The notes under the pieces are model-generated. The model made no database searches and was not told the origin of the DNA. It saw only the letters and a list, made by a program, of their open reading frames with translations. The translations under genes were made by a program, and so were the position numbers. Positions 3,001 to 48,209 of a stretch of DNA of 64,000 nt are shown one piece after another (positions within the stretch are counted from its first letter, which is position 1; the number at the start of each line of letters is the position of its first letter). Source of the DNA: Rebecca billardiae RCC1528 (lineage: Eukaryota; Protista; Haptophyta); the NCBI GenBank assembly GCA_965240325.2, contig OZ251237.1, positions 682,001-746,000 of the forward strand. The letters run 5' to 3'.

Positions 3001-6000
3001 GCCCCGCTCGAGCGCGACGCGGCCATCGAGCTCTTCAAGTCGCGGCTCGGCGTGTCCCACGAGCTGCCCTCCGCGGTCGAGGGCGCGATGCTGGTGCGCG
3101 CGCAGGGCTCGCCGTATCTCGTGTGCGAGATGGCGCGCTATCTTCTGGACATGGAGTGTGTCCGCTTGGTCGACGGCGTGCCGACGCTCGGCGACGTGAA
3201 GCCGTCTGAGCTGCGCGAGCTGCCGACGATGGAGCACCGCGTCCTACTCGCGCAGATCGATCGGATGCCGCCCGCCGAGCAGCGGCTGCTCAAGACGTGC
3301 GCTCTGATTGGCCACTCGTTCTCGATCGCGGACGTGCACGCGCTGCAGGCGCAGGCGAGCGCCGCCGGCCTCCACTCGTCGCAGGAGATCTCGGACAGCC
3401 TCCTCTCGAGCGAAGATCTCTTTGGAATCTACTTCCAGCTGATGAATCTCGAGCGGCGCGACATGCTGCGGCTCACCGACTCGACGGAGCTCGTCTTCAC
3501 CTTCGCGAAGCGCGTGATCCGCGAGGTTGCGTACGGTACCATGACGTACACGCAGCGCAAGGCCATGCACTCGGTTGCGGCGCAGTGGCTGCGCGCGCGC
3601 CTCCACACGGGCGGGGAGTTCTGCGCGGACGACTTCGTGCGGCTCGCGAGGCATCACCAGCAGGCGGACGACGCGCCCGGCGCGGCGGAGGCGTGGCAGA
3701 GCGCCGCGAAGCTCGCGCTCGCCGACTGCTCGTTCGAGGAGGCCTGTGCGTTTGTGCTTGCCGCGGTCGAGCTGACCGCGCCGCGCGCGGCCGCGGGCAG
3801 CTCGATGCGCAGCTCCGGCTCCGGCGGCCGCGGCTCGATGCGCCGGCTGAGCGTGCCGGCGGACTCGGAGCTCCTGCCGGACGCGACGTGGCTCGTGCTC
3901 GGCGTCTCGCTCCACCACGTCGGCTTCGTCGGCGACGCGGCGCGCACGTTTGAGGACTTTCTCGATCGCGACGACTTTGGCTGGCTCGCGAGCTGCGTGC
4001 CGCGCGCGCGCCGCCGCGCCGAGCGCGCGAGCACGCTGCCGATGACGCGGCTCTCGAAGCGGTTCTCGATCCGAGCGCTCGGCGTGTCCGACAGCGCGTG
4101 GGCGATGGAGGAGCCCGCTGAGCCCGACGTCGCCGAGAGCTCAGTCGAGGGCGGCGGCAGTACAAACCCGCGCCGCCGGCACGGGGCGGGCTCGGCGACG
4201 CACGTGGGCTCGATGGCTCGCTCGGTGATGCCTCTGGTCGCCGAGCGGCGCGAGCCCACGCCGGGCGAGCCGCCGACGAGCGCCAAGCCGCGCGCGTCGG
4301 CGAGCCGAAGGCGGCTGCTCATGGATGCGCGCCCGCCGCTGCTCCGGCTCCGGCCGAGCGCGGCGACGATTGAGAGCGTCGACGAGCGGTGCGGCCTCGC
4401 CCTCACACTCGCAGCGCTGCTCCACCTCACCGCCGCCACGATCGGCCAGCCCAGCGCGGCGCAGACGACCAGCTGCGCGAGCCTGGCCGATCGGGCGCTC
4501 CGGGTGGCCGCAGAAGTGGAGCGGCGCGCCGCGCCCGAGCTCGCGGCGCTGTGCGCGCCGCTGGTGGTGAACGCACGCTCGTGGCCCGCGACCGCCGCGC
4601 GGCTGCTCGCCAAATATGAGCTGCTGGCGGCTCCGCTGCTTGAGGGCGGCGCGGACGCGGCGGGCGTGAGCGTGCTGCCGTCGCCCAGCGAGCGTCGGCC
4701 GCGCGCGCGCACGCTGCACTCCGCGTCCGACGGCGGCGAGCGCGGCGCGAGCGCGGGCCGCGCGATCGCCCGCATGGCGCGGCTGTGCGCGCTCCACCTC
4801 TTTGGTCTCGCGTACCTGAGGCTGGGCGACGTTGAGCGCGGCCGTTATTACGAGCACCTCGCGCTGCACGAGGCGATCCGCTGCCGCTCGCTGCTCATGT
4901 GCCAGCGCTCGTGCCTCGGGCTCGCGCTCGTGCTGTGGGAGGAGGGCGAGCTGCTCGAGGCCGCGCACCTGCTCCAGTACGTGCGCAGCATCTGCGTCGA
5001 CCTCGGCGACGCCCACGGCGCGCAGCTGATGAGCGGCTGCTGCGTGGTCGCGGCCGCCATGCTGCTGCGCTCGACGGGCGACCTCTCCTCGATGGGGCGA
5101 GTCCGGGAGCTCGCCCGGACCTCGGGCGTGCCGGCGATCGAGGCGTTCGTGCTCCTGCGCTCGGCGGACGACGACGCGGCCCCCGAGCTCACCGAGATCG
5201 AATCTCGGGTGCTCGAGCTGCTGCAGGCGCACGACGAGTCCAGCGCCGAGTACAACTGCTTGGCGTACGTGCCTGCCTACTGTCACACGCGCGTGTGTCT
5301 CGAGGTGCTCGCGCGCGGGCTCGGCGACGCCGAGCTCGCGCGCGCGCGCGCGCACGCCGCGGTGAGCCGGCTGAGCGCGCTCGCGGCCGAGTGGCGCGTG
5401 CTGCTGCCGCGCGCGCTGCTGCACGAGGGAGAGCTCGCCGTGATGCTCGGCCAGCGCGGCCGCGCGATCCGGCTGTGGCAGGACAGCTTTCAACTCGCCG
5501 CGCGCTCGGACCTCAAGCTGTGCCGGGCGGAGGTGCTCTCGCGGCTCGCGCTCGTGACGACGGGCGAGCGAGGCGCGTCGTTCATGGAAGCCGCCTCCGA
5601 GTCCTTCCGCGAGCTGGCGCTCCTCTCGGAGGCGGCGGAGGCGGAGGATTGGCTGCAGGCGCACGGCGCGGAATCCTTTGACGTGTGGACGACTGTCGAG
5701 CCCGACGCGCAGCGCGAGCTCGGCGCCGAGCTCGAGGAGCTGCTCGAGCGCGCCGGCGAGCCGTCGAGCGACGAGCACGGGCCTTCGGACGCGGCCGCCG
5801 CCTCGTGGGTGCGCGAGCATATCGCGCTCGTCTCCGAGTCCCGCACGCACGGCGTGAGCCAGCGGGAGACGGACGCGGTGATCAGCCGGATTGCCGAGGG
5901 CAAGCGCAAGCTCACGGAGGATTCGTATCGCGAGCTGCACACGCGCGTGAAGGCGCTGGGCCAGGAGCCGCCGCCCTCGGCCGCGCGCCGCTCGCTCAAG

Positions 6001-6735
6001 TCGTCGGCGAGCTCGACGGGCGACTTGCTGGGTGCCGCCGGGCTGCGCGGCTCGACGGGCGCGGTGGGCGACGGCGCGACGCTCGGCACCGAAGCGAACT
6101 CGGCGCCGCTCCGCACGCGCTCGCGCGCGCAGCTCCTAGGCGCGAGCGCCGCATCCGACCCCGACCGCGCGCTCCTCAGCGCGCATCTGCGCCGCGCAGA
6201 CTCGGACGCATCGTCGCGTGGCACCCCGCAGCAGGACTCGCGCCATGCGCCGCCGCACGCCGGCGCGCCGCACCTGGCGGAGCCATCCCGCTGCAGTGGC
6301 AGCCCGCCCGCGTCGCTCCCGATCGACGAGCGCCGCGCGTCGGTCGAGCGCCGCGCGTCGGTCGAGCGCTCGTCCGTCGATTCGCTCGGCGGCGCGGGCA
6401 GCTCGATTCGGTCCGGCCAGACCAGCGAGACGATCACGCCGCCGGCCGCCGGGCGGCGCTCGCTGCTTCCCAGCCGCTCCATGTCCAAGGCCACGCTGGA
6501 GGACCGCGAGCTGCACAAGATGATCTCGGCCGAGCGCCGCGGCATGTCGTTCCGTACGGGTCTCACCGCGCGCGCTGCCGCCGACTCGTCAGAGTCGGGC
6601 ATCATGGAGCGCCCGCGCGCGGCGACGTCCGATCGTCACGAAGACGATGCGCCGGCGCCGCAGCCGCCACCGACGCGACGCAGCTTCTCCAGCTCGCTCG
6701 AGGAGCGTCGCAACCGGCGACAAGGATCAGGCTGA
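1..6735 (+). CDS. Soluble adenylyl cyclase (ADCY10)-like / STAND-class NTPase, 5'-partial
   Basis: Open frame from the window edge. It starts with LKGISYPV, which resembles the KG..PV end of class III cyclase domains. Walker A GPQGAGKTT at 172-198; Walker B LLLAIDNANHMDPLSW at ~2818-2865; then GSPY (GxP motif), LIGHSFS, FTFAKRVIREVAY, LARHH and a helical TPR-like tail. The cyclase domains themselves would lie upstream of the window. Confidence 0.75.
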   Translation: MNLKGISYPVPNYVPLVRETADAVIGTERAPTIVGQEALLRGVNEHLDAAGRVCVLTGPQGAGKTTVLRDVCTRLQASGARRAMYIPLDPLSDRPLHVWQVVFQRLLEDAKAAALLADLRTLAAQAEAESSNPPPAESAPQPLPQGLALPQGPQLTLAAADAADDSGSGVTAGTGSGSGAGLGMGAGRIARRRASATARVAPSTGHAARRRSRMLSGLAGGRGASQLVEEPAAEVSQQLAMLRRARQESRTLADASTGARTGPEGTQADDRRHTRLAAPPALQPVPSASVLVAGAPADERTDEGDDVHASFTSQLGGSSLSGSGSPRRGSAQQPAASSSGPARQLAPLAPLAQRPHFRPRYSSLFGTVLAPGQGALPPTQPGSPMRSPLRRQRFNAAVDPSPSPLRHEPRSSPGLRARAWARAAGPLERMSEAASHGSSRWSASASPDGPSGRFRLSIGTVHAESTAPARGIHRGGRGKSTGDASDSGATEASSELARASAMSDAFSVVGELPRDSITDEPTTRRWAERVERRVSADGPSLPSLAASPLLAPVESALTPNSMVPSPGRPGDGASDAPSRLELARSGRPSDKSGDAARSDRPSDTRSRTGRPSDALSRSDRPSDARSRTGRPSDARSARPSDACSRTTRPSGETEQPGGAGPGVGLGGGGGAGLASSFSFRGRSRARATRLSHLFGGAEQPQSSGAAPFAPSSPRHADMRSSAMAESHAGFFNKLTSGVRRRSRMISRVNWQAHDGGDGASGDASAEPAHATASVRPSAEPGRSLRPSGEGPGAATSVGTTPRGGGDAAAEARPTTLRLKRKKATTQSLVSRGRSSEGDGGEGIGGGGALRGGRRRSELRATLEGGWTRGGVTPPFLFQSELLRSSPSLVASLPVLNPLLALVGVRLPAGPALSLGVNFERFADVAQLVLSELLRLSGRELLLAIDNANHMDPLSWRLIAHPRFAELKVSASLALRELTAQQARLVHVMQLQESRLLSREVAPLERDAAIELFKSRLGVSHELPSAVEGAMLVRAQGSPYLVCEMARYLLDMECVRLVDGVPTLGDVKPSELRELPTMEHRVLLAQIDRMPPAEQRLLKTCALIGHSFSIADVHALQAQASAAGLHSSQEISDSLLSSEDLFGIYFQLMNLERRDMLRLTDSTELVFTFAKRVIREVAYGTMTYTQRKAMHSVAAQWLRARLHTGGEFCADDFVRLARHHQQADDAPGAAEAWQSAAKLALADCSFEEACAFVLAAVELTAPRAAAGSSMRSSGSGGRGSMRRLSVPADSELLPDATWLVLGVSLHHVGFVGDAARTFEDFLDRDDFGWLASCVPRARRRAERASTLPMTRLSKRFSIRALGVSDSAWAMEEPAEPDVAESSVEGGGSTNPRRRHGAGSATHVGSMARSVMPLVAERREPTPGEPPTSAKPRASASRRRLLMDARPPLLRLRPSAATIESVDERCGLALTLAALLHLTAATIGQPSAAQTTSCASLADRALRVAAEVERRAAPELAALCAPLVVNARSWPATAARLLAKYELLAAPLLEGGADAAGVSVLPSPSERRPRARTLHSASDGGERGASAGRAIARMARLCALHLFGLAYLRLGDVERGRYYEHLALHEAIRCRSLLMCQRSCLGLALVLWEEGELLEAAHLLQYVRSICVDLGDAHGAQLMSGCCVVAAAMLLRSTGDLSSMGRVRELARTSGVPAIEAFVLLRSADDDAAPELTEIESRVLELLQAHDESSAEYNCLAYVPAYCHTRVCLEVLARGLGDAELARARAHAAVSRLSALAAEWRVLLPRALLHEGELAVMLGQRGRAIRLWQDSFQLAARSDLKLCRAEVLSRLALVTTGERGASFMEAASESFRELALLSEAAEAEDWLQAHGAESFDVWTTVEPDAQRELGAELEELLERAGEPSSDEHGPSDAAAASWVREHIALVSESRTHGVSQRETDAVISRIAEGKRKLTEDSYRELHTRVKALGQEPPPSAARRSLKSSASSTGDLLGAAGLRGSTGAVGDGATLGTEANSAPLRTRSRAQLLGASAASDPDRALLSAHLRRADSDASSRGTPQQDSRHAPPHAGAPHLAEPSRCSGSPPASLPIDERRASVERRASVERSSVDSLGGAGSSIRSGQTSETITPPAAGRRSLLPSRSMSKATLEDRELHKMISAERRGMSFRTGLTARAAADSSESGIMERPRAATSDRHEDDAPAPQPPPTRRSFSSSLEERRNRRQGSG
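1757..1950 (+). repeat. Coding minisatellite (27-30 bp units) encoding RPSD repeats
   Basis: About 7 copies of cggccgagtgac..., giving GRPSD/DRPSD repeats inside the low-complexity insert. Confidence 0.8.
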
Positions 6736-9025: not shown

Positions 9026-11143
9026 TCAGAACGGCGGCTGCTGTGGTTGCGGGGCGCGCCGGCCGCGGATGGACGCGCCCGCGAGCGCGGCCGCAAGCTG
9101 TTGCGGGTTGGGTGCGCCGGTGGCAAAGAGCGAGATCACGTCGAGCGCGCTCAGCCGCAGCACGCTCGAGGCGCTGTCGCCGACGCCGTACGACACGAGC
9201 AGGTCCCACCGCCCCTCGGCCGAGAGCATCGCCTGCTGCACGTTGCGCAGCCGCTGCACCTCCCACGGGTCGACGCTGGGGAAGGCGCTCCAGTCGGTCG
9301 TCGACTCGTCGCCGACGCCCGGCCGCCTCGAGACGAGCTCGAGGCCGGAGACGAAGGCGATGCGCAGGCCGCACTCGCCGTGGAGCTTGGTGGGCGGGCC
9401 CTGCTGCGTGGGGCCCATTGCCGGCTGCTCCCAGCCCGCCTGCCGCGCGCTCGGGAACACCGCCGCGGTGCGCAGCCGGCAGTGCCCGCGCGCGTATTGA
9501 GGGATGTGCGCCCAGCCGAGCTCGCAGCCTCCATACCAAGGCACGTGCGAGCTGTGCGTGAGCAGTGGCAGCTCCGCGCTCACGCCGAGCAGCTGCAGGG
9601 GCTGGCGCGCGCTCGCGATGAAGAGGAAGTGCCGGTAGTCCTGGAACGACACGGGCGGGCACCCGTCGCCACGCCCCCCGTTCAGGCTGCTCGAGTTCAC
9701 GAGGCCCTTCAAGCGCGTGTGCACAACACCAAGCAGCACGCTGCTCTCGCCGTGAAATGGCCGGGCAAGCCGGAGCGGCAGCAGCGGCGCGCCGTTGAGG
9801 TGCACGCTGGTCTGGCTCCACGAGCCAGCCGGCCATGGCGGCTGGAAGCCGCGCGCGGCAAGCCCGAGCTGCGAGAGCATCACCGCCTGCGCCTTCAGGT
9901 AGCGCACAAACTCGCTCGACCGACTCGCCATGGTGCGAGGCTCGTGCACGCAGCGCAAACACGCGGGCAGCGCGGCGGCTGCTGGCTCATCCCGTAGCAG
10001 CGTCGAGATGCCGCGGAGCTCGCACGTCGCGAGCTCCGTCGGGCCGAAGTGGTATACCATTACCAGCGAGTCTGAGCGCCCGCCGCTCTCATCCACCCTC
10101 ACGGGCGGCACGAGCGGGCTCCAGTTCTTGTCCTTGATTGTGGCGCCGCGTGCGGCGGCGCCATCCAGGCTAAGCCCCATTGCTGAGATGCGCTCCGCGC
10201 GCGCCTCGGCCGTCCGCTCGGTGGGCGAGAGGTCGCACACCTCGTGCACGCGCAGCAGGCCCTGGCCGCAGCCGCGCGTCTGGGAGAGGCTGCCCCGGCA
10301 TGCCGAGTGGCACCGGCCCTGCAGCCCGCTCACGTTGCGCTGGGCCACACCGTGGCCCGCGCCGTGGCCAACTGACGGGGCCGAGCTGCTGGCCGCCCCG
10401 GCGGTCGCGCCGCTGCTGCCGCCTGGCGGGGCCGCGCACACCTCGAGCAGCCGCTGCTGCGAGGTGCGCAGCTGGGTCTCGACTTCCCGGTCGACGAGCG
10501 AATCGCGCCGCGCGGCCCGCTGCGCGACCACGTCGTCGTTGCGCGGCGGCGGCCCATCCACCCCGGCGACCACCAGCAACGAGCCAACTGGCTCACCTGG
10601 AAGGGTGGCCGCGCTGAGGCGCGGGGTGAGGCTCCAGCGCATCACGCGCAAGCCCTGGCGCATCGTGGTGACGGGCGGCGTCGCGTCGTCGGCGAAGAGC
10701 GCCGTGTTCACGGTGACCATCATCAGCAGCCCGTCGTCCACGCGCGCCAGCTTCGGATCCTCGCCCTCGCCAAGAGGGTGCAGCACGCGCGCAACGCAGT
10801 AGCCGTGTATCGCGCACGACGTCTCGTTCGCGTACAAGACGAAGGAGAATACGATGGAGCGGTAGCTCTCGACGGCACGCGTCCGGCAGAGCAACGTCGA
10901 CGCGTCGTCCCGCATCGACATGCAGCGCTTGCCGTCGCCATGGACGAGCATCATGCGCGCGACGCCAGCGAGGTGTCCGCTCGGCAGGCCGCACGAGCGG
11001 CACGACGCGATGCTTGGGTTGGTGATCCAGAAAGACGACTCCGGACCGGCGGCGACGATTCGCGGCAGGTCGACCCACTCGATGTGGGAGTGCAGCGGGC
11101 GCCCGAGCACCGCGGCGGCGAGAACTGCGGCAGCCATCGTCAT
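9026..11143 (-). CDS. Five-bladed beta-propeller glycosyltransferase/phosphorylase-like protein (BMT/GT91-GH130-like), intact copy 1
   Basis: 705-aa intronless ORF with ordered motifs NPSI, GEDPKL, KDKNWSP, GVVH, YRHF, IAFVSGL and LVSYGVGD, typical of this clan. Short hydrophobic N-terminus. Confidence 0.6.
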   Translation of the reverse strand: MTMAAAVLAAAVLGRPLHSHIEWVDLPRIVAAGPESSFWITNPSIASCRSCGLPSGHLAGVARMMLVHGDGKRCMSMRDDASTLLCRTRAVESYRSIVFSFVLYANETSCAIHGYCVARVLHPLGEGEDPKLARVDDGLLMMVTVNTALFADDATPPVTTMRQGLRVMRWSLTPRLSAATLPGEPVGSLLVVAGVDGPPPRNDDVVAQRAARRDSLVDREVETQLRTSQQRLLEVCAAPPGGSSGATAGAASSSAPSVGHGAGHGVAQRNVSGLQGRCHSACRGSLSQTRGCGQGLLRVHEVCDLSPTERTAEARAERISAMGLSLDGAAARGATIKDKNWSPLVPPVRVDESGGRSDSLVMVYHFGPTELATCELRGISTLLRDEPAAAALPACLRCVHEPRTMASRSSEFVRYLKAQAVMLSQLGLAARGFQPPWPAGSWSQTSVHLNGAPLLPLRLARPFHGESSVLLGVVHTRLKGLVNSSSLNGGRGDGCPPVSFQDYRHFLFIASARQPLQLLGVSAELPLLTHSSHVPWYGGCELGWAHIPQYARGHCRLRTAAVFPSARQAGWEQPAMGPTQQGPPTKLHGECGLRIAFVSGLELVSRRPGVGDESTTDWSAFPSVDPWEVQRLRNVQQAMLSAEGRWDLLVSYGVGDSASSVLRLSALDVISLFATGAPNPQQLAAALAGASIRGRRAPQPQQPPF

Positions 11144-15224: not shown

Positions 15225-17880
15225 AATGGCGATGGTCGCGCGGCGCACGCATGATGGTCGCGCGCGCGTGATGATCGGCGCATGATGATCGGTGCGCGCG
15301 CATGACGGCGCGCACGAATGATGAACGGCACACGCGCATGATGATCGGCACGCACGCATGATGATCGGAGCGCGCGCATGATGAACTGATGATCGGCACA
15401 TAATGATCGGTGCGCGCGCATGACCGTGCGCGCGCGTGACGATCACGCCCAGCCAGCGGCTCGAAGATAGACGATGAGCGCCATCACGCTCGAGCGAAGC
15501 AGAAGGTGATGAGTGAGGAAGAAGGAACAGGAATGAGGGAAAGGAACGCGCGATGCGTGACGAGAAGGATCAGGTGCGCCCGGCGCGAGGGATGGAACAC
15601 GTGTAGTAGGAACGAAACGGAACGGAAAGTAGCTGCTTGAGCGACAGGCAGAAAGTCATTGCCGATGATGAGCGCGTCCCCGCTCGAGCGACACAGAAGG
15701 TGGCAAGCGAGAAAGGCGGAGCTGGGATGAAGGAAAGGAACGCGCTGTGCGAGATGGGAAGGACCAGGAGCGTGCAGCGTGAGGCAGGGAATGCACGTAG
15801 ATCGGAACGGAACCGGATTGAAGGAGAGTCAGAGGAACGCGCGGTGTGACACTGAAGTGGAACGCTCCGGACCGCGCGTAGGAACGGAACTGAAGGCAGC
15901 TGCTCGAGCGAGAGGCAGAAGGTGATTGACGATGAGCGCGTCCACGATCGAGCGAAGCAGAAGGTGACGCGCGTGGATGACTGGCCAGGAGTGCAGGACA
16001 GGATTGGCTGTGGAGACGGAACAGACACGCGCGGCGTGAGGAAAAGGATGCACGCGCGTCGTGTAGATCGGAACGGAACTGGAATGAAGGAGCAGAGGGA
16101 TGCGCGGCGTGAGACGGAAGTGGAATGCTCGGACCGCGCGCGGGAACGGAAATGAAGGCCGCTGCTCGCGCGATAGGCAGAGGGTGATTGACGATGAGCA
16201 CGTTCACGCTCGAGCGAGGCAGAAGCGGTGACGCGTGCGGATGATTGACTGGGATGAAGGAGAGGAATGCGCAGCGTGAGTAGATGGAAGTGGAACGCTC
16301 GTACCGCGCACGGGAACGGAACTGAAGGCCGCTGCTCGAGCGATAGGCATGAGGTGATTGACGATGCGCCCGTTCACGCTCGAGCGAAGCGGAGGGTGAC
16401 GCGCGCGGACGAGAAGTTACGCGCATGTGAGGCGCAACGTCAGGCAGGCACATGTGACGCGCGAAGCCAAAGTTAAGCGCAGTGAGGCGCAGAGAAGTTA
16501 TATCATAGGTGCAAGTGACCCGTAAAGATACGCGCATGTGAGGCGCAAAGTTAGGCGCATGATTGTGACGCGCGGAGAAGTTAGGCGCAGTGAGGCGCAG
16601 AGAAGCAGTTAGGCGCAAGTGATGACCGTTAGGCGCAAGTGACGCGCGAAGTTACGCGCATGTAAGGCGCAAGGTTAGGCGCATGTGACGCGCGGAGAAG
16701 TTAGGCGCAGTGAGGCGCAGAGAAGTTAGGCGCAAGTGACCGTTAGGCGCAAGTGACGCGCGAAGTTACGCACATGTAAGGCGCAAAGTTAGGCGCATGT
16801 GATGCGCGGAGAGGTTAGGCGCAGTGAGGCGCAAAGACACGCGCATGTAAGGAGCAAAGTTACGCGCATGTGACGCTCGGAGAAGTTGGGCGCAGGCTGA
16901 CACGCAGCCGCGCGAGTGCGGGCTCAGGCGAGCGGCGGCGAGCGGCGGCGGCGTGCGTGACACGAGCACGCCGCGTGCGAGCGGCTTGGTCCGTATCGAT
17001 ATGCGCCCCGCCTTCGCGCGCTGCCGAAGGACGTAGAAGTAGCAGCATGGATGTGGCCACTGCCTGCCCCGCCGAAGCGCGCTCCATCCACAGCTCGAGC
17101 GAGGTGGCGGAAGGTGATGATGAGTGCGCTCTCGCGCGAGCGAAGCAGACGGCGATGAGCGCTGAGTGACCGCGACGGACGCCCGCGCAGCGGCACCTCC
17201 CGCGGCGCCCCGCTGCGCGCTCAGCCGCCGGACGCTGCAGGAGGAGTAGCACTGATGCACTCGTCGTCATCCCCAGGATACAAGCGCGCTCGAGCTCGAG
17301 CGAAGCAGAAGGCGCGGAGCGCGCGGCTCGTTCGAGCGAAGCAGAGGGTGGTGAGCTAGGAGCGCGCACGACGGGCGACAGCGCACCGCTCCCTCGCGCT
17401 CCGCTCCGCTGTGCGCCCAGCGCCGGAAGCCGCAGGAGACCCCGAAGCAGCACTGGTGCAATTGCATGAGGCCGGGCGTGATGAATGCGCTGAGGGCGCT
17501 CTCGCTCGAGCGAAGCAGACGGCGATGAGCGCTGAGTGACCGCGACGGACGCCCCTGCACCGGCACCTCCCGCGTCGCCCCGCTGTGCGCTCGGCCGCCG
17601 GACGGTGCAGGAGGACGCCGAAGCAGCACGGATGCACGCGTCATCCCCAGGATAAAAGCGCGCTGGCGCACGAGCGAGGCAGAATGCGCGGAGCGCGCGC
17701 CGCGCTCGAGCGAGGCAGAGGGTGGTGACGAGCGAAGAGCGCGCACGATGGACGACAGCGCACCGCCCCCTCACACTCCGCTCCACTGTGCGCCCAGCGC
17801 CGGAAGCCGCAGGGGACCCAGAAGCAGCACGGGTGCAATTTCATGACGAGGCCGGGCGGGATGAATGCGCGCGCTGCTCG
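15225..17880. repeat. Composite tandem-repeat interior of the split-repeat element
   Basis: ~20-bp atgatgatcgg(cg)n units (15225-15440); ~260-bp purine-rich units (15470-16410); gttaggcgca(a/t)gtgac units (16415-16890); ~360-bp degenerate units (17130-17880). Confidence 0.8.
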
Positions 17881-35228: not shown

Positions 35229-36581
35229 TCATGCGACGAACCAGTCGCGCGCGGGATCCCACTGACGGCCCAGCTTCTCGAGCACGCGCAGCCGTATGGC
35301 GCTCGAGCCGTACGCGAAGACGCGCAGCCGTCGCGTGCTCGTCGCGGCAGCCTCCGGTGCCGCCTCCGCGCCGTCACCGCCATCGTCGCTGGCAGCGACC
35401 GCCTTGGCTGGGACGAAGGCGTGTTTGGGATTCCACTCCGTCGCTGAGAGCACAGCCAGGCCGGCGGAGCGGAGCAATGCCTCCCATTGGCCAAGCGTCT
35501 TGCCGATGCTCCACAGCTGCACCTCCGCCGGCGGCGGGGCCGGCGCGCGCGCTGCCTTTGAGAAGTAGTGCAGCTTGCACGCGCGCAGCGCATCGACCGA
35601 GCACCGGCCCTGCCAGCGCGTGCCGTTGCTCGTGTGCTGCCGCCAGCGGTACACCGAGCGGCGCCCTTCGTCGGAGCGCACGCGCAGCTTGGCGGCGCGC
35701 AGGCCCGCGGCGAAGAAGCGCATCACGAAGTCGTAGTCCACCGGCCACGCGGCGGGCTCGCGATACGTGAGCGCCCTGGCCGCATCGCCGCCGCCAGAGT
35801 GTATGGCACACGCGCGAAGCGCGCTCGCGCGATAGAGGCCCGTCTGATGCAGCGAGGGCATCTCGACGAAGCGCGCGCGCTCGAGGTCGTCGTGCGCGAG
35901 CAGCTCGTTCTGCCACTCGACGTACCTCGTCATCGACGCCGACACGCGGTCGCCGAACAGCTCGATGGGGCTGAAGACAGCATCGAGCGTCTCGTCCGCG
36001 CCGAGCGCGGCGAGCATCAGCGCCAGCCGATCGGGGCCGTACTCGTCGTCGGCCTCGATGTGGGCGATGAGCGGCGCGCGCGCGCAGTCGAGGGCGGTCT
36101 GCAGAGCCGCCGCCTGCCCGCGACCGTGGCTGCTCACCACGCGCAGGAAGCTGCGGCTCGCCTCGCTCGCGAGCACCGCAGCGGCACACTCGGCCGCACT
36201 CTGGAGTGGTGCTGGCTGCTCGCTGGCGGGCGCCGCAGCGCCGAAGTTTGGCGTTGCGGTGGACTCTGGCCGAAGTGGCACGACGAGCGCCGGGTTCTCG
36301 GTGCCGTCTCGGGGCGCCGCCTCGCGCTCGACACGCGCGCGTTCCGGGCCGAGCTCGGCAGCGAGCGCATCGAGCCATTCGGTCGAACCGTCCGTGGACC
36401 AGTCGTCGGCGACGATGACCTCGACGGCGAGGCCGGACTGCACGAGCGGCGAGCGCACCGCGTGCGGCAGCCACGGCATCGCGTTGTTGCACGGCACGAG
36501 AACGCTCACGTCGAAGTCCGAGGAGCTCTCGGATGCGCGAAGAAGCTTGAGCTTCTTCGCGGCCGGAGGCGACGTCGCCAT
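35229..36581 (-). CDS. Glycosyltransferase family 2 (B3GNTL1/QTGAL-like)
   Basis: VSVLVPCNNAMPWL, IVADDWSTDGS, IAHIEADD, RYVEWQN, PVDYDF, YRWRQH, QLWSIGK. Confidence 0.8.
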   Translation of the reverse strand: MATSPPAAKKLKLLRASESSSDFDVSVLVPCNNAMPWLPHAVRSPLVQSGLAVEVIVADDWSTDGSTEWLDALAAELGPERARVEREAAPRDGTENPALVVPLRPESTATPNFGAAAPASEQPAPLQSAAECAAAVLASEASRSFLRVVSSHGRGQAAALQTALDCARAPLIAHIEADDEYGPDRLALMLAALGADETLDAVFSPIELFGDRVSASMTRYVEWQNELLAHDDLERARFVEMPSLHQTGLYRASALRACAIHSGGGDAARALTYREPAAWPVDYDFVMRFFAAGLRAAKLRVRSDEGRRSVYRWRQHTSNGTRWQGRCSVDALRACKLHYFSKAARAPAPPPAEVQLWSIGKTLGQWEALLRSAGLAVLSATEWNPKHAFVPAKAVAASDDGGDGAEAAPEAAATSTRRLRVFAYGSSAIRLRVLEKLGRQWDPARDWFVA

Positions 36582-36657
36582 CGTGGCTGCTCCGCACGCC
36601 TTCGGGCCTCCCAACCCGGACCGGAAACTAACTCCGCGCGTCTTCGTGTGTCGGGCG

Positions 36658-37602
36658 ATGTCGGCACCGTTCCTTACGGCCGTGCTGGCTGCGGCGCTCT
36701 CGTACAGCGCGCAGCGCACCGCGGTGGGCCACGGCGCAGTGGGTGCGGCTCATCGGATGCGCTGCCGCGCCCACGCGTCGGACTCGGCGGCGTCCATTGA
36801 CAGGATGGACACGCCGGCAACGCGCAAGGACGCATCCTGCGTCGGCGATGACACCTCTGTGCTCTACTGGCCGATGACCGAGCACATCTTCGAGCGGATG
36901 CGCTCGGACCTGACGGGGCTGCGGGACCTCGACCTTCCCGCCGACATGGTGCTCGCGCGCAGCGCCAAGCCAGTCGCCGAGATGGAGAGCTGGTGCTTCC
37001 AGTCGGACCGATTCCGAAAGATCAGGTGCACACACATCGACGCTGGCCCCAAGGCGCAGGTGCTCAACTCGCTGTGGTACCCGGCGCCTCAGTACAACCT
37101 GCCCGTGCTCGGGCTCGACCTGCTCTCCTTCGGGCCGAAGAAGCTCTGCGTCGTCGACCTGCAGCCGCTCCCGCCGCACACGGCGCACCACCACGAGCTG
37201 GTGCAGCCGCTCGCCGCGGTGCGTGAGAAGTACCCGCTGTTCCTCGGCGAGAAGTCGTCCAAGATCTACGAGGACGACCTCTTCTTCTCGCCGGTGATGC
37301 TGTTCGGCCGTTTCCGCGACGAGGACGAGGTCAAGTCCACACTCTTCCCCGCGCTGAAGGAGTACGTCGACTTCTACATCAACCTGGCCAACACGTGCGA
37401 GCCGAATCACGACCCGGAGGCGATGGCTTCGGTCCTCGAGGGCCAGCGCGCGTACGACCAGTACAACAGCGAGCGGGACCCCGCGATCGGGCTGTTCCGC
37501 TCGTACTTTGGCGACGCCTTCTCTGAGCGCTACGTGTTCGACTTTCTTTTCACCTCCGCGGTGAAGACCGAGCACACAGGAGGCGCCGCTCGCACGCGCT
37601 GA
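36658..37602 (+). CDS. pebA: Ferredoxin-dependent bilin reductase, PebA (15,16-dihydrobiliverdin:ferredoxin oxidoreductase)-like, plastid-targeted
   Basis: FRKIRCTHIDAG..AQVLNSLWYP, PVLGLDLLSFG, VVDLQPL, FFSPVMLFGR, QRAYDQYNSERDPAIGLFRSYFG...FLF. The N-terminus has a signal peptide plus a transit-like segment. Confidence 0.85.
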   Translation: MSAPFLTAVLAAALSYSAQRTAVGHGAVGAAHRMRCRAHASDSAASIDRMDTPATRKDASCVGDDTSVLYWPMTEHIFERMRSDLTGLRDLDLPADMVLARSAKPVAEMESWCFQSDRFRKIRCTHIDAGPKAQVLNSLWYPAPQYNLPVLGLDLLSFGPKKLCVVDLQPLPPHTAHHHELVQPLAAVREKYPLFLGEKSSKIYEDDLFFSPVMLFGRFRDEDEVKSTLFPALKEYVDFYINLANTCEPNHDPEAMASVLEGQRAYDQYNSERDPAIGLFRSYFGDAFSERYVFDFLFTSAVKTEHTGGAARTR

Positions 37603-42115: not shown

Positions 42116-43402
42116 GCCTAGCGCCTGCGCGCGCGAGCGCGGCGAGGCGGGCGGAGACGGTGCCGGGCCGGGAGAGAAGGGACGCGCGGTGAGCGTCCAC
42201 GGGCCGCCTCGGCAAGCCGATGTCCGCGCGTACCGGGGGCGCCCTGGGCGCCGCGAGGCGGGCGCGCGGGCCTGCCCGCGTACACCCATTTTCAGAGAAG
42301 TAGAGAACTCTTATGATATTGTTGATGAGCGAATTCAGGCCTCATCAACAAATGATCATATGGGTCGAGAGCGAGAATGTTCGCCTTCAGGCTGTCTCGT
42401 TCATCTGAAATACAAGAATTGGATTGCCACCGAACCAAATGTTTGGTTCGCTTTATGCAGAATCTCGTTTCAGCTGAATGGCGGGCGATCGTCTTTCGTT
42501 GAAACGGTGTTTTTGAAGCGCAGTTCTCTTAAGAGAAGAGGGATGCGTCTAATCTAAAACGCTGTTTTTCAGAAGCGCGTGAATCAAAGCCGACCCAACC
42601 TATCGTTTCTATGGTCGGCGAGCTGTTTCAGGCTCTTACAATTCAGGCATCTTACTATGACGGAATGTTCGAACACACGGCTGGTGTTATGTGCTATTCC
42701 ACCCTGCATTCCCCTAAGTGTTACTATCATTAAAATTAGCATCTACTACAAACGCAATCATTGCGGCAGCGATATCCACTCATACGCGGTGGCCACCTAC
42801 CGAAAAATCCCCAAAATCCTGCGCGCATCCTCTTTTTGATTTTGCGGAGCACGTGCGCCGCCCCCCCCCCCGGCTTTCGCTCACGCTCAGACCTTTCGGG
42901 GGGGGGGGCGTGCGCCATAAGACTACGCTACTGTAGCAGATGCTGCGCGTGCATATAATAGCCGGCCATATTCGGATATTCGTGCTCAGGTCCAGGTGTC
43001 ACCCTGGGACCGCATGACGAGGCTTCGTAACGTCCCGCCGACTGCGTCTGCGGCCTGCGCCGATGATCGAGTCCCGATTGATGCCGATGGCGGCGGATAG
43101 AAAAGTGTATAGCATCAGTCGTCGTATGTTGCCAGCAAGTACTATTACCGCTACTACTGAGCTATCTGAATCACTCATCAGTCGTCATCAGACTAGTGAC
43201 AGTTACGATTTTGCTTCTGGACACAGGACCGTTGGCCGCCCGCGCGTTGCCGCGGGCGGCTGCGGCGGGCCGCGCCCGCCGGGCGCGAGCCGGGTGGGGC
43301 CCGTCGGCCGGTGCGGCGGACGGGGGGCGGGGGGGCACGCAGCCACAGCTGCACGACGCGCAGCGTGGTCGGACTGGTCGGTCCCGGGCCGCCTCGGCAC
43401 GC

Positions 43403-45703
43403 TCAGACCCGCCTCCTGGCCATCACCACAGGTATGACCTGCTGTAGTTGAGACCGATGCAGTGCTCGTGCGGCTCCTCCTGGGCCCGGCGCTCCCGGCG
43501 CTGTCGATGAGGTTGGCGCCCATAGGTGCGCTGGCGCATCAGCGGTAGTGTTGATGCTTGCTGGTAGTCCCTGTTCGTGGCTGCCGGGGGTAGCCCGGAC
43601 TGCATCGTGCGCTTTGCCACGCTGATGGCGTTCGTCCAGGGCCCAGGCACCATCATTGACCACCCCGTCGTCAGCCGAGTGGATCGTGCCGTCTGGCGAG
43701 CGCCAGCGGACGATGCTGACTTCCACCAGCGGCGGCGATGGCGACCGCGGCGGCCCGACGTCCGAAACAGCGGCAGTGCGGCTGGTGTGCTTGCGTCGGC
43801 GCTTTGTGGCGCTCGGTCCCTGGTTGCCGGTGCCATGCTCCAGCTTTCGCTTGGGGACAGCGAGCCGACTGCGTACCATGCCAGCCAGCTTGTGCGTAGC
43901 GCACCGGCTGGCACGCGCGTCGCCCAGCATGCCGAATGAAGGCCCCTTGGTGCAGTCCGCGTGATCACACTTGGAGTTCTTCACGTCGACCATGCCGGCC
44001 AGCTTATGCGCAGCGCACAGGCTGGCACGCGCGTCGCCAGGCATGCCGAATGAAGGCCGTTTGGTGCAGTCCGCGTGATTACACTTGGGGTGCTTCACGT
44101 TGACCATGCCGGCCAGCTTGTGCGCAGCGCACAGACTGGCGCGCGCGTCACCCGGCATGCCGAAGTAAGGCCGTTTGGTGCAGTCCGCGTGATCACACTT
44201 GGGGCTCTTCACGTTGACCATGCCGGCCAGCTTATGCACAGTGCAGAGGCTGGCGCGCGCGTCGCCCGGCATGCCGAACGAAGGCCGTTTGGTGCAGTCC
44301 GCGTGATCACACTTGGGGTGATTCACGTCGACCATGCCGGCCAGCTTATGCGCAGCGCACCGGCTGGCGCGCGCGTCACATGGCATGCCGAATGAAGGCC
44401 CCTTGGTGCAGTCCGCGTGATCACATTTGGGGCTCCTCACGTCGACCATGCCGGCCAGCTTGTGCGCAGCGCACAGGCTGGCGCGCGCGTCGCCCGGCAT
44501 GCCGAATGAAGGCCGTTTGGTGCAGCCCGCGTGATCACACTTGGGGTGCTTCACGTTGACCATGCCGGCGAGCTTGTGCGTAGAGCACAGGCTGGCGCGC
44601 GCGTCGCCCGGCATGCCGAATGAAGGCCCCTTGGTGCAGTCCGCGTGATCACACTTGGGGCCCTTCACGTTGACCATGCCGGCGAGCTTGTGCGTAGCGC
44701 ACCGGCTGGCGCGCGCGTCGCCCGGCATGCCGAAGTAAGGCACCTTGCTGCAGTCCGCGTGATCACACTTGGGGCTCTTCACGTCGACCATGCCGGCCAG
44801 CTTGTGCGTAGCGCACCGGCTGGCGCGCGCGTCGCCCGGCATGCCGAACGAAGGCCACTTGGTGCAGCCAGTGTGATCACACTTGGGGCTCACCATGTTG
44901 ACCATGCCGGCCAGCTTGTGCGTAGCGCACCGGCTGGCGCGCGCGTCGCCCGGCATGCCGAATGAAGGCCCCTTGGTGCAGTCCGCGTGATCACACTTGC
45001 GGCCCTTCACGTTGACCATGCCGGCCAGCTTATGCACAGTGCAGAGGCTGGCGCGCGCGTCGCCCGGCATGCCGAAGTAAGGCACCTTGGTGCAGTCCGC
45101 GTGATCACACTTGGGGCCCTTCACGTCGACCATGCCGGCCAGCTTATGCGCAGCGCACCGGCTGGCGCGCGCGTCGCCCGGCATGCCGAACGAAGGCCAC
45201 TTGGTGCAGCCAGTGTGATCACACTTGGGGCTCACCATGTTGACCATGCCGGCCAGCTTGTGCGTAGCGCACCGGCTGGCACGCGCGTCGCCCGGCATGC
45301 CGAATGAAGGCCCCTTGGTGCAGTCCGCGTGATCACACTTGGGGCTCTTCACGTTGACCATGCCGGCCAGCTTATGCACAGTGCAGAGGCTGGCGCGCGC
45401 GTCGCCCGGCATGCCGAATGAAGGCCGTTTGGTGCAGTCCGCGTGATCACACTTGGGGTGCTTCACGTCGACCATGCCGGCCAGCTTATGCGCAGCGCAC
45501 CGGCTGGCGCGCGCGTCACATGGCATGCCGAATGAAGGCCCCTTGGTGCAGTCTGCGTGATCACACTTGGGGCCCTTCACGTCGACCATGCCGGCCAGCT
45601 TATGCGCAGCGCACCGGCTGGCGCGCGCGTCACATGGCATGCCGAACGAAGGCCGTTTGGTGCAGTCCGCGTGATCACACTTGGGGTGCTTCACGTTGAC
45701 CAT
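43403..45703 (-). CDS. EsV-1-7 cysteine-rich repeat array protein (16 x 38 aa) with an NLS-like C-terminal region
   Basis: Unit MVxVKxPKCDHADCTKxPxFGMPGDARASxCxxHKLAG matches the C-x4-C...C-x2-H EsV-1-7 motif. Uninterrupted 766-aa ORF; PKRK and TKRRRKH follow the array. Confidence 0.85.
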   Translation of the reverse strand: MVNVKHPKCDHADCTKRPSFGMPCDARASRCAAHKLAGMVDVKGPKCDHADCTKGPSFGMPCDARASRCAAHKLAGMVDVKHPKCDHADCTKRPSFGMPGDARASLCTVHKLAGMVNVKSPKCDHADCTKGPSFGMPGDARASRCATHKLAGMVNMVSPKCDHTGCTKWPSFGMPGDARASRCAAHKLAGMVDVKGPKCDHADCTKVPYFGMPGDARASLCTVHKLAGMVNVKGRKCDHADCTKGPSFGMPGDARASRCATHKLAGMVNMVSPKCDHTGCTKWPSFGMPGDARASRCATHKLAGMVDVKSPKCDHADCSKVPYFGMPGDARASRCATHKLAGMVNVKGPKCDHADCTKGPSFGMPGDARASLCSTHKLAGMVNVKHPKCDHAGCTKRPSFGMPGDARASLCAAHKLAGMVDVRSPKCDHADCTKGPSFGMPCDARASRCAAHKLAGMVDVNHPKCDHADCTKRPSFGMPGDARASLCTVHKLAGMVNVKSPKCDHADCTKRPYFGMPGDARASLCAAHKLAGMVNVKHPKCNHADCTKRPSFGMPGDARASLCAAHKLAGMVDVKNSKCDHADCTKGPSFGMLGDARASRCATHKLAGMVRSRLAVPKRKLEHGTGNQGPSATKRRRKHTSRTAAVSDVGPPRSPSPPLVEVSIVRWRSPDGTIHSADDGVVNDGAWALDERHQRGKAHDAVRATPGSHEQGLPASINTTADAPAHLWAPTSSTAPGAPGPGGAARALHRSQLQQVIPVVMARRRV

Positions 45704-45724
45704 GCCGGCTAGCTTGTGCGTGGC
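43880..45724 (-). repeat. Coding tandem array of 114-bp units (16 full copies plus a partial one)
   Basis: Strict 114-nt periodicity with no indels. Confidence 0.95.
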
Positions 45725-46051
45725 GCGAGCGACGTTCGCCGGTAGGTGGGGTGGTCAGGCCGCGCGATCCGGTTCGCCGATGCCCGCCCGATCGATCGGT
45801 GGACGACGAAAATCAAATATCAAAACTGCATGATGATACCTACCGATGGTATCATCATTGTACATCAAGTCATCAACTACATCGTCAAGTAAGCTATACG
45901 TTATCGTCATGATGATTGATGACACTGATGATACACGACGACTGTTGAAACGTAACTCTGACATAGTCAGCCGATCAGTGCGGACTCAGGCTCACTGCTG
46001 CATCACGTGGTACTCATTCGCGCCGTTGCCACTGCCACCGGTCTGCTGCTA

Positions 46052-47904
46052 CTACGCATCCGGCGTGAGGGCGGCACCATCTGCGGCGTCGTCGACGTTG
46101 CCCCCGCCCGCCGTTGCCTCGCCCTCCGTGCCGCTGTGCTCAGGCGAGCGGCGGAGATGCGGGATCAGTGGCGAGGTCCTGTGCCTGTACACGACGTAGC
46201 CCATCGAGGTGCCCGCCGCCTCCTCGGTCTGCGGGCGCACCACGCCTATCCTGTCGCCGTTCTTCAGCGTGACCGTCTTGTCGCGGCCGACAAACTCGCC
46301 GTTCACGTAAGTGCCGTTGGACGAGAGGTCAGTCAGCCGCGGCTGCAGCTGGGGCATCTGCCGTGACGAGCCTTCGGCGGGCTCCTGCGTGCGCCGGGGT
46401 GGTGGCAGCCGAGCCGCGCGCGGGGGTGAGGCGCGGCGCTGGCGCACGGCCTCTCCGCGCGCGCGCGCACGGCACGCGGCGCACGGCGCTCCCGCCGCGC
46501 TGCTCACCTCGTCGGCCGAAGACCAGATGCGACAGTGCAGCGACGACACGAACGGGTTGGAGAAGATGATATCGGCGCGACGCGACCGACCGATCGTGTA
46601 CTCGCGCTTGGGCTGCAGCGTCAGCGCCTCCTTCGTCAGCCGCCCTGCGTGCCGCGCGCGCGCAGATGCCCGGCGAGCGTTGGTCGTGCGAACGCGCGCG
46701 CGCGCGTACGCGCGCGTACGCGCGCGACAGCATGCGCGCTCGCGCAGAGCTGCAGGTGGGCAGTGCGCGCGGCCGCGCTCACCGTCTCGGCTGACGACGA
46801 CGAGCTCACCCAGCAGGTACTTGCGCGGCTCGACGCTGACGCTCGGCGTGGGCGGGTTCTCGTCCGTCTGGTATGCCATCGCCTCGCCGATCAGCGGCTT
46901 GAGGAAGTCGAGCTCGGCGCAGTCGGCAATGCGCTCGCGTACCGCGCTGAGCGAGTCAGCGTGCATGAGCGGCCATCTGACGTGCTGCGCGAGCCGGCGG
47001 AGCTGGGCGTGCTCGTCGGGCTGGCCCGCCGCCCAGCGCTGGACGACGTCCCACACGTCGTCCTCCTGCGCCGCGTCGCGCGGCGGGCGCGCGAGACGCG
47101 CACCGGCCGCGCGCATGAGCCCGGCCCGCGGCGCGCGCGCGCACGCGACGCGGCAGGTGGGGGCGCTGGGCCGCGCGCGCGCGCGCGCCGCACTTTGGTG
47201 CAGACCAGGGCACTTGACGAGACGGCCTCGAGCATGAGCTCGACGCTGAGCGAGGTGAAACTAGGGTTGCTCGACGCCACCGCCATGAAGTCGGTGCGCA
47301 GCACCTCCGCGCACTGCGCGCACAGCCGCTCGCACTCGAGCCAGCGGCCAAGCTCCCACCACTCGTGCAAGCTCTCGGGCCTCACGCACGACTCGAGGTA
47401 CGTGCAGCACTGGTCGCAGAGGGAGCGCACGTCGTAGAAGTCGCAGAGGGTGAAGAGCGCCGCCGCCGTCTCCCGATCCAGGTCGATCGGCTTGCCGTGC
47501 ACGTACCGCACGAGCAGCTCGAACGAGTCCGGGTCTGTGTCCTGAAGCGTCACGACGGACATGGCAGACTCCTGCATGTGCAGCCCGTCCGAGCCGATGA
47601 GCATGGCGGCGAGCGGGCGCGAGGCCGAGGCGATGAGCGATCGGACGCATCTGAAATCGCGCTCGCGCCCCTTATCGACCGCGCGGATGATCACCATCTC
47701 GTTGCTCACGTCGGCCGCGCTCGCATCGTCCGCGGCCGCAGCGCCGTCGTTGTCGAGCCGCGAGTGGAGCAGCGCGAGAGACGCCTGCAGCTCGGCGTAC
47801 GCGCGCACGGCGACACTCGGGTTCGTGCGCCTCCGCTTCGACTCGCGCGGGCCCACGCCGACCACGCCGGAGCCGGACGCGGACCGCTTCGGATTCCTTC
47901 GCAT
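46052..47904 (-). CDS. BTB/POZ-BACK-FHA domain protein; introns 47066-47193, 46645-46782, 46385-46507
   Basis: BTB (SLIASAS..LAAML, PDSFELLVRYVH, CDFYDVRSL), BACK (K|EDDVWDVVQRW, HVRWPLM), FHA (TIGRS, VSSLHC, DLSSNGTYVNG, LKNGDRI). Confidence 0.85.
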
Positions 47905-48209
47905 CGGGCGTCGAGACCACCACCACCACCGTGCCCCACTGGCCAACCCCAAAAACCTGCACCGGTGGACACAGGCCTCCCGTGATGATCTTGACGCATC
48001 AAGATCCGGGGTGCCTCCGAGTCCGGGCCACTGCGTTTGACTTCGCCTCGGCCGTAGCGTATCGGGGAAATCATCAAGGCGTTTTGCGATAAAATCGCCT
48101 CGCGATTTTCAAAGCGGCCCTCAGCTGTGTAGTGAAAGCCCAGCCGCCCTGGGTGTTGAGAGCAGCCACAACTCCCGACCGCTCGCGGCCGGGGAGCTTG
48201 CGCACCGAG

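Follow-up and report, generated by a model that had tools for sequence, protein, structure and literature searches.

An unusually long and uniform EsV-1-7 array in the haptophyte Rebecca billardiae, a candidate DNA-binding relative of giant-virus proteins with a nuclease-like domain

THE ARRAY GENE AND ITS UNITS

In this work, we analyzed a gene for a tandem array of EsV-1-7 repeats in the haptophyte Rebecca billardiae RCC1528, which lies on the minus strand of a 64,000-nucleotide stretch of DNA (contig OZ251237.1, positions 682,001 to 746,000; hereafter, the window, whose own numbering is used throughout). The EsV-1-7 family is expanded in brown algae, where it is among the largest gene families (10.1101/2024.02.19.579948); it has a patchy distribution, occurs in giant viruses, and has been proposed to be a zinc finger, with no known biochemical activity. 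One of its members, IMM (IMMEDIATE UPRIGHT), controls early development in Ectocarpus. We found that the window array is longer and more uniform than that of any relative found, that the three unit positions changing fastest in other arrays also have, as a set, a raised nonsynonymous rate here, and that most relatives continue after the array into a nuclease-like domain that is absent from the window. On these grounds we tentatively favor a role in DNA binding.

The open reading frame (ORF) at 43403..45703 on the minus strand encodes a protein of 766 amino acids (aa) that, when cut from Met1, divides into 16 units, each exactly 38 aa long, and a tail of 158 aa. Tandem Repeats Finder (TRF) reports a single array at 43875-45720 (period 114, 16.2 copies, 90% matches, 0% indels, score 2852), and both procedures reproduce the 16 indel-free 114-bp units described in an earlier note on this DNA, which was made from its letters alone. 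The features of the gene are as follows.

43880..45703, minus strand: 16 tandem 114-bp (38-aa) EsV-1-7 units, predicted zinc modules (TRF, unit table, Pfam PF19114 in 16 stretches, GC content at third codon positions [GC3] of 0.83 as in host genes); unit i runs from 45703-114(i-1) down to 45590-114(i-1)
45704..45757, minus strand: degenerate partial unit, in frame (PPHLPANVARATHKLAG), with a TGA stop ahead of it at 45755-45757 (read from the sequence; the TRF repeat reaches 45720)
43403..43879, minus strand: basic C-terminal tail, 158 aa plus the stop codon at 43403-43405 (region search, Pfam, GC by codon position)
43787..43855, minus strand: basic motifs PKRK (aa 617-620) and TKRRRKH (aa 633-639), 13 residues apart, resembling a nuclear localization signal (NLS) and suggestive of nuclear import (translation)

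The array ORF has its first start codon at 45703 (ATG), because an in-frame TGA stands at 45755-45757. The predicted ligands C9, C14, C31, and H34 are present in 16/16 units (64/64 ligand residues intact), the spacing C-X4-C-X16-C-X2-H-X12 is exact in all of them, and neither stops nor indels occur across the 1824 bp of the array. Its GC3 is host-like, its pI is 9.2, and the net charge per unit ranges from +1 to +4, the family mean being +2.2. A 30-nt pattern derived from the unit matched 15 times, with 0 matches expected by chance, and a second array of the EsV-1-7 motif type was not found anywhere in the window. The two basic motifs that the earlier note had placed downstream of the array are read from the translation at the residues listed above.

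FAMILY MEMBERSHIP, PREDICTED FOLD, AND RELATIVES

The window protein is a canonical EsV-1-7 repeat protein (PF19114 / IPR043822), as the earlier note had surmised. The Pfam family PF19114 (EsV_1_7_cys) matches the ORF with E=7.6e-216 (698 bits against a cut-off of 25, in 16 stretches), a single unit suffices for a match at E=2.8e-15, and a Foldseek search of BFVD returned the EsV-1-7 protein Q8QNQ2 as the top match (E=2.5e-17, template modeling [TM] score 0.69, 45% identity), both structures being predicted models. The Pfam search of the ORF yielded nothing but EsV_1_7_cys above the curated cut-off, and no KRAB, SSXRD, or PR/SET domain. The AlphaFold2 (AF2) model of four units has a predicted local distance difference test score (pLDDT) of 85.8 and a predicted TM score (pTM) of 0.47, and because of the latter the model does not settle how the units are placed relative to one another. 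Within each unit, DSSP assigns short strands at positions 20-21, at 30, and at 2-3 of the next unit. Searching PDB sequences with a profile of the four-unit alignment returned 0 matches.

The family is large, with 5938 cluster representatives at E<=0.001, and the relatives found are distant. A metagenome DNA pattern scan for the window unit gave 0 matches, protein-guided scans of metagenome and viral contigs returned relatives at only 30-42% identity, the exhaustive search of representatives gave a best match of 59% identity, and the exact window protein product was not found on record in the collections searched. The nearest relatives, P0007 and P0201, are 58-59% identical to the window array; their loci are two metagenome contigs (L001 and L026), each with a ribonucleotide reductase gene adjacent. 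These two contigs are collinear, come from different sources, and both carry the ribonucleotide reductase small subunit together with a RING/helicase gene; the GC content of L001 is 66%. They could belong to a giant virus of exceptionally high GC content or to an element integrated in the genome of a related alga.

A second group of relatives resembles the window gene in being array-only. Two of its members, at L031:2511-4679 (P0260) and L032:6001-7764 (P0239), have long N-terminal regions, lie on gene-sparse, eukaryote-like contigs, and are 48-50% identical to the window array. In this subgroup Gly17, Pro7, and Gly21 are fixed, and the same residues are found in many window units. The brown-algal matches in our sample, P0045 and P0120, are likewise array-only.

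GROWTH OF THE ARRAY AND ITS FAST POSITIONS

Units of the window array are on average 84% identical to one another; among 74 other arrays, the highest such value is 82% and the median 60%. Blocks of units have been duplicated: units (4,5) and (7,8) differ by 3 and 2 nt, and units (1,2,3) and (11,12,13) by 7, 4, and 2 nt, so that the 16 units are not independent of one another. Since all four gametes occur in 59/153 site pairs, the units also recombine. The ratio of nonsynonymous to synonymous diversity (pN/pS) between units is 0.51, and a neighbor-joining tree of the units carries 43 nonsynonymous and 27 synonymous changes, an omega of 0.47 that lies below neutral (P=0.002). The unit identity, the pN/pS, the intact ligands, and the four-gamete result together indicate a young array shaped by block duplication and exchange, with its scaffold under purifying selection. 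We propose that the array grew recently and in this lineage, by unequal crossing-over of blocks of one to three units and by recombination between units, while selection kept the scaffold (the ligands and the segments FGM, DARAS, and HKLAGMV) intact.

Against this conserved background, 16/38 unit positions vary in amino acid (3-7, 10, 12, 13, 15, 17, 19, 23, 24, 30, 32, and 33). The earlier note had variation concentrated at positions 3-7, 17/19, and 30-33. This needs correcting in the number of positions that vary and at position 19 (13 S, 3 Y), whose diversity in this array is not above that of 13 or 24; the most diverse positions are 6, 17, 33, 30, 3, 5, and 32. Its reading of the 17/19 pairs along the array (RS, GS, RS, GS, WS, VY, GS, WS, VY, GS, RS, GS, RS, RY, RS, GS) agrees exactly with ours, as do the codons at position 17 (CGG/GGG/TGG/GTG) and the tie of His6 to R17-S19, seen in 5/5 His6 units. 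These pairs amount to five types that have been spread by block duplication, and G, W, and V at position 17 are single-base neighbors of the common codon CGG.

Position-specific variability, on which the earlier note had built its case, is real and extends across the family. Within the 74 other arrays, the most variable positions are 17, 6, and 19, with ratios of within-array to between-array diversity (Hw/Hb) of 0.94, 0.94, and 0.87, respectively, compared to 0.55-0.70 at equally diverse positions, the bootstrap intervals being disjoint. At the DNA level, we examined six arrays other than that of the window, taking pN/pS as nonsynonymous diversity over mean synonymous diversity. When pooled, codons 19, 17, and 6 gave the three highest ratios (1.48, 1.36, and 1.12), and in the two youngest of these arrays the triad ratios reach 1.7-2.8. 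The ratio at codon 17 exceeds 1 in 7/7 arrays, including the window array (P=0.008).

With the triad 6/17/19 thus fixed beforehand from other arrays, we tested it in the window array. It bears 18 nonsynonymous changes compared to 6.9 expected at omega=1, that is, an omega of 2.6 (P=3e-4 by Poisson, 0.002 by conditional binomial, and 0.013 when overdispersed synonymous counts are resampled), whereas the unit outside the triad has an omega of 0.29. Variation at the triad is hence greater than expected under neutrality, as the reading of the earlier note would require; yet the excess stems from positions 6 and 17, not 19, so that the hot positions here are not the pair it had named.

The members of the triad are also linked to one another. 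Across the family, positions 6 and 17 and positions 17 and 19 covary beyond a within-array shuffle (z about 3), and His6 goes together with Arg17 with an odds ratio of 3.7, although shared descent of duplicated units may inflate both values. In orthologous units, which were available from 5 protein pairs by a loose criterion and from 0 by a stricter one, the residues at 6/17/19 match in 40-44% of cases compared to 20-23% in non-orthologous units, a comparison of low power; between those few units the triad is partly kept, yet it is the fastest-changing part. Beside the triad, positions 3 and 6 are strongly coupled in the family (z=15.5), with Asp6 accompanied by Asn3 in 48/48 cases and His6 and Asn6 found mostly with Asp3, which points to a local contact in the structure where the module begins.

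THE DOMAIN THAT FOLLOWS THE ARRAY IN RELATIVES

Among the structural matches in BFVD were giant-virus proteins (from a cedratvirus, Faunusvirus, and pithoviruses), several of which are named 'Endonuclease', and for this reason we examined the segment after the array in relatives. At least 100 residues follow the last unit in 232/257 relatives. Of those segments, 205 are homologous to one another and make up a group whose domain core is found in 203/257 relatives (79%). At the fetched loci that are not cut by a contig end, the domain lies in the array ORF in 19/19 cases, including all seven giant-virus contigs from IMG/VR. Both of the nearest relatives, P0007 and P0201, carry it. The loci with an array and this domain are as follows.

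L001:4052-4771: C-terminal domain after an array
L026:2338-3057: C-terminal domain after an array
L018:5619-6257 and 9551-10285: two array-plus-domain genes within 10 kb
16 other loci: array plus C-terminal domain

The domain measures about 215 aa and consists of a CxxxxC...CxxC ribbon, a predicted zinc ribbon, and a core of the form RPD...ExDExQH...RxNPD, in which E130, D132, E133, H136, R147, R164, N166, and D168 are invariant and R115-P116-D117 nearly so. Its sole Pfam match is DUF2726, which is weak and limited to two members, and four members weakly match a PHROG family named 'homing endonuclease'. The AF2 model of the domain (pLDDT 91.2, pTM 0.74) was compared to the PDB with Foldseek, and nearly all of the top 50 structures were PD-(D/E)xK nucleases, among them the R2 restriction-like endonuclease, Hjc resolvases, McrC, Bax1, and restriction enzymes. 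Judging from this predicted structure, with which the weak DUF2726 and PHROG matches agree, the C-terminal domain of the relatives is probably a PD-(D/E)xK nuclease domain.

This architecture is not universal. Of the cellular members that have a name, those from Coccomyxa, Pylaiella, and Sphacelaria have no C-terminal domain and an Effrenium protein has a different candidate one, all four being without the nuclease-like domain. For the window itself, a hidden Markov model (HMM) built from the 205 domains gave no match to the core in the six frames of the 64 kb.

A second C-terminal domain, unrelated to the first, follows the arrays of three proteins (P0224:325-502, P0177:448-622, and P0055:273-490, the last from Effrenium voratum). 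Its conserved motif 'EFHGDFWHGNP ... YIWE' recalls Vsr-type endonucleases. We could not tie it to them, given an NCBIfam match at E=0.11, no PDB match, and no profile relation to the main domain.

THE TAIL AND THE GENOMIC SURROUNDINGS

The tail of the window protein has a pI of 11.6. The region search returned no homologues of it, and Pfam gave no matches. Its coding-type GC3 signal fades from about 43700 downward, and in the distal part (43403-43700, minus strand) GC peaks at codon position 1, not 3, unlike in the array and the host genes; the coding status of the distal tail is therefore doubtful. The securely coding part looks to be the first 45-60 residues, basic motifs included.

According to the composition profile, the array gene is flanked on both sides by low-GC spacers, in a window where GC ranges over 57-76%.

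45758..46051, no strand assigned: low-GC spacer between the BTB-BACK-FHA gene and the array gene, with 42% GC at 45800-45999, probably intergenic or promoter (composition profile, sequence)
42400..43200, no strand assigned: low-GC stretch (45-59%) downstream of the ORF, probably 3' untranslated region or intergenic (composition profile)

The upstream gene on the same strand (46052-47952, minus) encodes BTB, BACK-like, and FHA domains over two overlapping ORFs, so that it must contain at least one intron or frame change, and it terminates in two stop codons 300 bp ahead of the array gene. We considered whether the two might form a single BTB-FHA-EsV-1-7 gene; we rejected this in view of the two stops after the FHA ORF, the spacer of 42% GC, and the lack of any relative with BTB or FHA. 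Elsewhere in the window lie genes of cellular type, for a ferredoxin-dependent bilin reductase, a Tubby protein, a metacaspase, a STAND NTPase, and an MFS transporter, and in view of these neighbors, with host GC3, we rejected an endogenous giant-virus island.

The closest named relative of the bilin reductase is from the haptophyte Diacronema lutheri (67% identity). Its ORF (35965-37602, plus strand) is 545 aa long, compared to 314 aa in the recorded product P0121, and the same gene is present on a 3.4-kb Logan contig (L025) of run ERR14847148, which therefore probably sampled the same organism. At positions 1-6735 (plus strand), an ORF of 2244 aa runs past the start of the window, with weak AAA_16 and STAND NTPase matches near its N-terminus and internal 30/60-bp tandem repeats at 1786-1949. 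A non-coding cluster of tandem repeats at 16094-16895 (periods 23-25, 71, 114, and 170 bp) sits within a 14-18 kb stretch of strong positive GC and AT skew; its 114-bp period is coincidental and unrelated to the EsV-1-7 units.

WHAT THE ARRAY MAY BIND

We favor, tentatively and as a reading that is a little short of an even prospect, the view that the window protein combines an EsV-1-7 CCCH array with a basic, NLS-like tail and serves as a DNA-binding reader without a cutting domain. Each of the sixteen 38-aa CCCH modules would presumably hold one zinc ion. Positions 6, 17, and, across the family, 19 change faster than silent sites, and most relatives, mainly on giant-virus-like and metagenome contigs, place the same type of array ahead of a PD-(D/E)xK nuclease-like domain. 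We prefer DNA as the ligand because tandem zinc modules before a nuclease are most simply understood as its DNA-targeting part; by this reasoning, DNA binding by the array is plausible. The array would then most likely bind DNA along its length, with the fast triad providing the best candidate contact residues, and the protein, if expressed and imported into the nucleus, could, for example, have a regulatory role or compete for viral target sites. A far-reaching extension, which we consider unlikely, is that EsV-1-7 arrays join C2H2 fingers and TAL effectors (TALEs) as the third kind of modular DNA reader found in nature. Positions 6/17/19 of each module would set local sequence preference, and giant viruses would rely on the array to direct a PD-(D/E)xK nuclease to its target; in the window protein, the host would have kept a nuclease-less reader of 16 modules, which might serve as a regulator or as a decoy on viral nuclease sites. 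The TALE/PRDM9-like reader of the earlier note survives in part, in that position-specific diversification is above neutral and a nucleic-acid role is plausible, and falls short in homology and fold likeness, given the absence of helices from the AF2 model and of any significant PDB match.

Several observations weigh against a DNA reader in the window. The argument from fusion reaches the window protein by homology only, because the window has no nuclease-like domain. The nuclease assignment itself comes from predicted structure and a sequence motif: neither Pfam nor PDB gave a sequence match to the domain core, and the Foldseek matches to the PDB, with probabilities up to 0.91, have a best E on the scale of 3e-3 and none below 1e-3. 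As for the array, its four-unit AF2 model contains no helix of 4 or more residues according to DSSP, and Foldseek found nothing in the PDB below E=1 for it. At sites that are conserved in the family, the window units carry residues other than the consensus (Y/F30 to R/L, N21 to G, and K7 to P), and among 531 units sampled from the first 120 relatives, G, W, and V are seldom or never found at position 17. The omega values derive from Fitch counts on a tree of recombining units, the counts are small, and silent sites are overdispersed, the most conservative P being 0.013. Last, the distal tail (43403-43700) may be untranslated, intronic, or in another frame.

The same evidence bears on three other explanations. 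The array could be a scaffold for proteins or for some ligand other than nucleic acid, built from small zinc modules like those of LIM proteins, in which case positions 6, 17, and 19 would be the least constrained surface residues and the viral arrays would dock their enzyme on a protein partner. We hold this to be doubtful. It would fit with the weak PDB neighbors of the array model, which include LIM, RING, and PHD modules; with the prediction of no helix or known DNA-reading element; with the pooled triad pN/pS of 1.1-1.5 in other arrays, which is near neutral; and with IMM, the sole genetically studied member of the family, being without known biochemical activity (PMC7457493). However, a nuclease-like domain fused to the array in 79% of relatives points to DNA, the units are basic family-wide, and the triad ratios in the window (2.6) and in the two youngest other arrays (1.7-2.8) are above neutral.

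Alternatively, the array may have expanded recently and be drifting, with hardly any function today or none, as a coding minisatellite that was amplified by unequal crossing-over from a transferred viral gene minus its enzyme domain and is now decaying. The lack of close relatives (0 DNA pattern matches, at most 42% identity at loci, a best representative at 59%, and a product not on record), an orphan tail with a weak coding signal, the replacement of conserved family residues (the aromatic at 30, N21, and K7), and the origin of G and W at position 17 by single-base changes from CGG, one of them at a CpG, are all consistent with such decay. We nevertheless regard it as very unlikely, as the omega of 0.29 outside the triad and the overall purifying selection (P=0.002), the uninterrupted 1824 bp with every ligand residue in place, and the host-like GC3 speak against it. 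Moreover, G17, P7, and G21 are not simply damage, because they are the rule in the related array-only subgroup on eukaryote-like contigs. Binding of RNA, as known for many CCCH zinc fingers, with unit variation tuning the preference for RNA motifs, is in our view highly improbable. The CCCH ligand set and the basic array would agree with it, but the spacing C-X4-C-X16-C-X2-H is unlike that of TTP-type fingers, which is C-X8-C-X5-C-X3-H; Pfam zf-CCCH does not match even at E up to 10; and the partner domain of the relatives resembles DNA nucleases (resolvases, restriction enzymes, and the R2 endonuclease).

What is found in the window is an unusually long and uniform member of the already known EsV-1-7 family. 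We did not find the combination of a fast triad and a nuclease-like partner domain described in the literature searched. Two things make EsV-1-7 function directly testable, namely, that the same three positions are the fastest in independent arrays and that a nuclease-like domain is fused to the array in most relatives. If the array reads DNA unit by unit, it would provide a new scaffold for programmable DNA recognition and would explain how virus-derived repeats turn into host regulators; failing that, the locus is no more than a large and young member of a family already known.

COMPARISON WITH KNOWN SYSTEMS

Resemblance to other short zinc modules is limited. The TTP-type CCCH RNA-binding fingers differ in spacing and are not matched by zf-CCCH, as described above. 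The WRKY19-type zinc finger (PF24906) has a similar short C...GC...C..H knuckle, with a weak match (E=0.006) on units of P0004 and faint precomputed matches; it stays below the Pfam threshold on family members and gives no match on window units.

The likeness to TAL effectors lies in the layout, that is, near-identical repeats without indels, position-specific variation, and an NLS (an NLS-like segment here) after the repeats. TALE repeats are two-helix units of 33-35 aa that bind no metal and confine their variation to residues 12 and 13. The window protein, in contrast, is predicted to consist of helix-less zinc modules of 38 aa with 16 variable positions, the hot ones (6, 17, and 19) being 11-13 residues apart, and neither Pfam on the ORF nor Foldseek against the PDB on the four-unit model revealed a sequence or fold relation to TALEs. 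C2H2 arrays, such as those of KRAB-ZNF proteins and PRDM9, come closer in behavior: they too string zinc mini-domains in tandem at a fixed period, joined by a conserved segment between units, and they too evolve by unit duplication and recombination with few fast positions per unit, a likeness of behavior that is no criterion of membership. Their units follow C-X2-4-C-X12-H-X3-5-H and fold as beta-beta-alpha, whereas those of the window are CCCH with spacing 4/16/2, have no predicted helix, and find no match to Pfam zf-C2H2.

The R2 retrotransposon protein likewise joins zinc modules to a PD-(D/E)xK nuclease, with N-terminal fingers and a C-terminal restriction-like endonuclease, and its structure 8gh6 is the best PDB structural neighbor of the C-terminal domain of the relatives (E=2.8e-3, probability 0.80), a match below usual significance. 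The relatives are without a reverse transcriptase, and the window gene is without any nuclease part. Nearer still are the giant-virus-like array-plus-domain proteins P0007 and P0201, which have the same type of array. P0007 shares G21, R30, and the stretch 'DARASRCAAHKL' with the window protein; the zinc ribbon and the PD-(D/E)xK nuclease-like core are theirs and are missing from all six frames of the window.

The closest correspondence is with the EsV-1-7 family itself, as represented by ORF 7 of EsV-1 and by Ectocarpus IMM, with which the window protein shares the motif spacing, the 38-aa period, the tandem layout, and the predicted fold. Typical arrays of this family have 5-9 units at about 60% identity, compared to 16 units at 84% here, about twice the length. 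From the EsV-1-7 proteins of brown algae, the window protein is set apart by its haptophyte host, by non-consensus residues at positions 7, 21, and 30, and by an orphan tail with NLS-like motifs.

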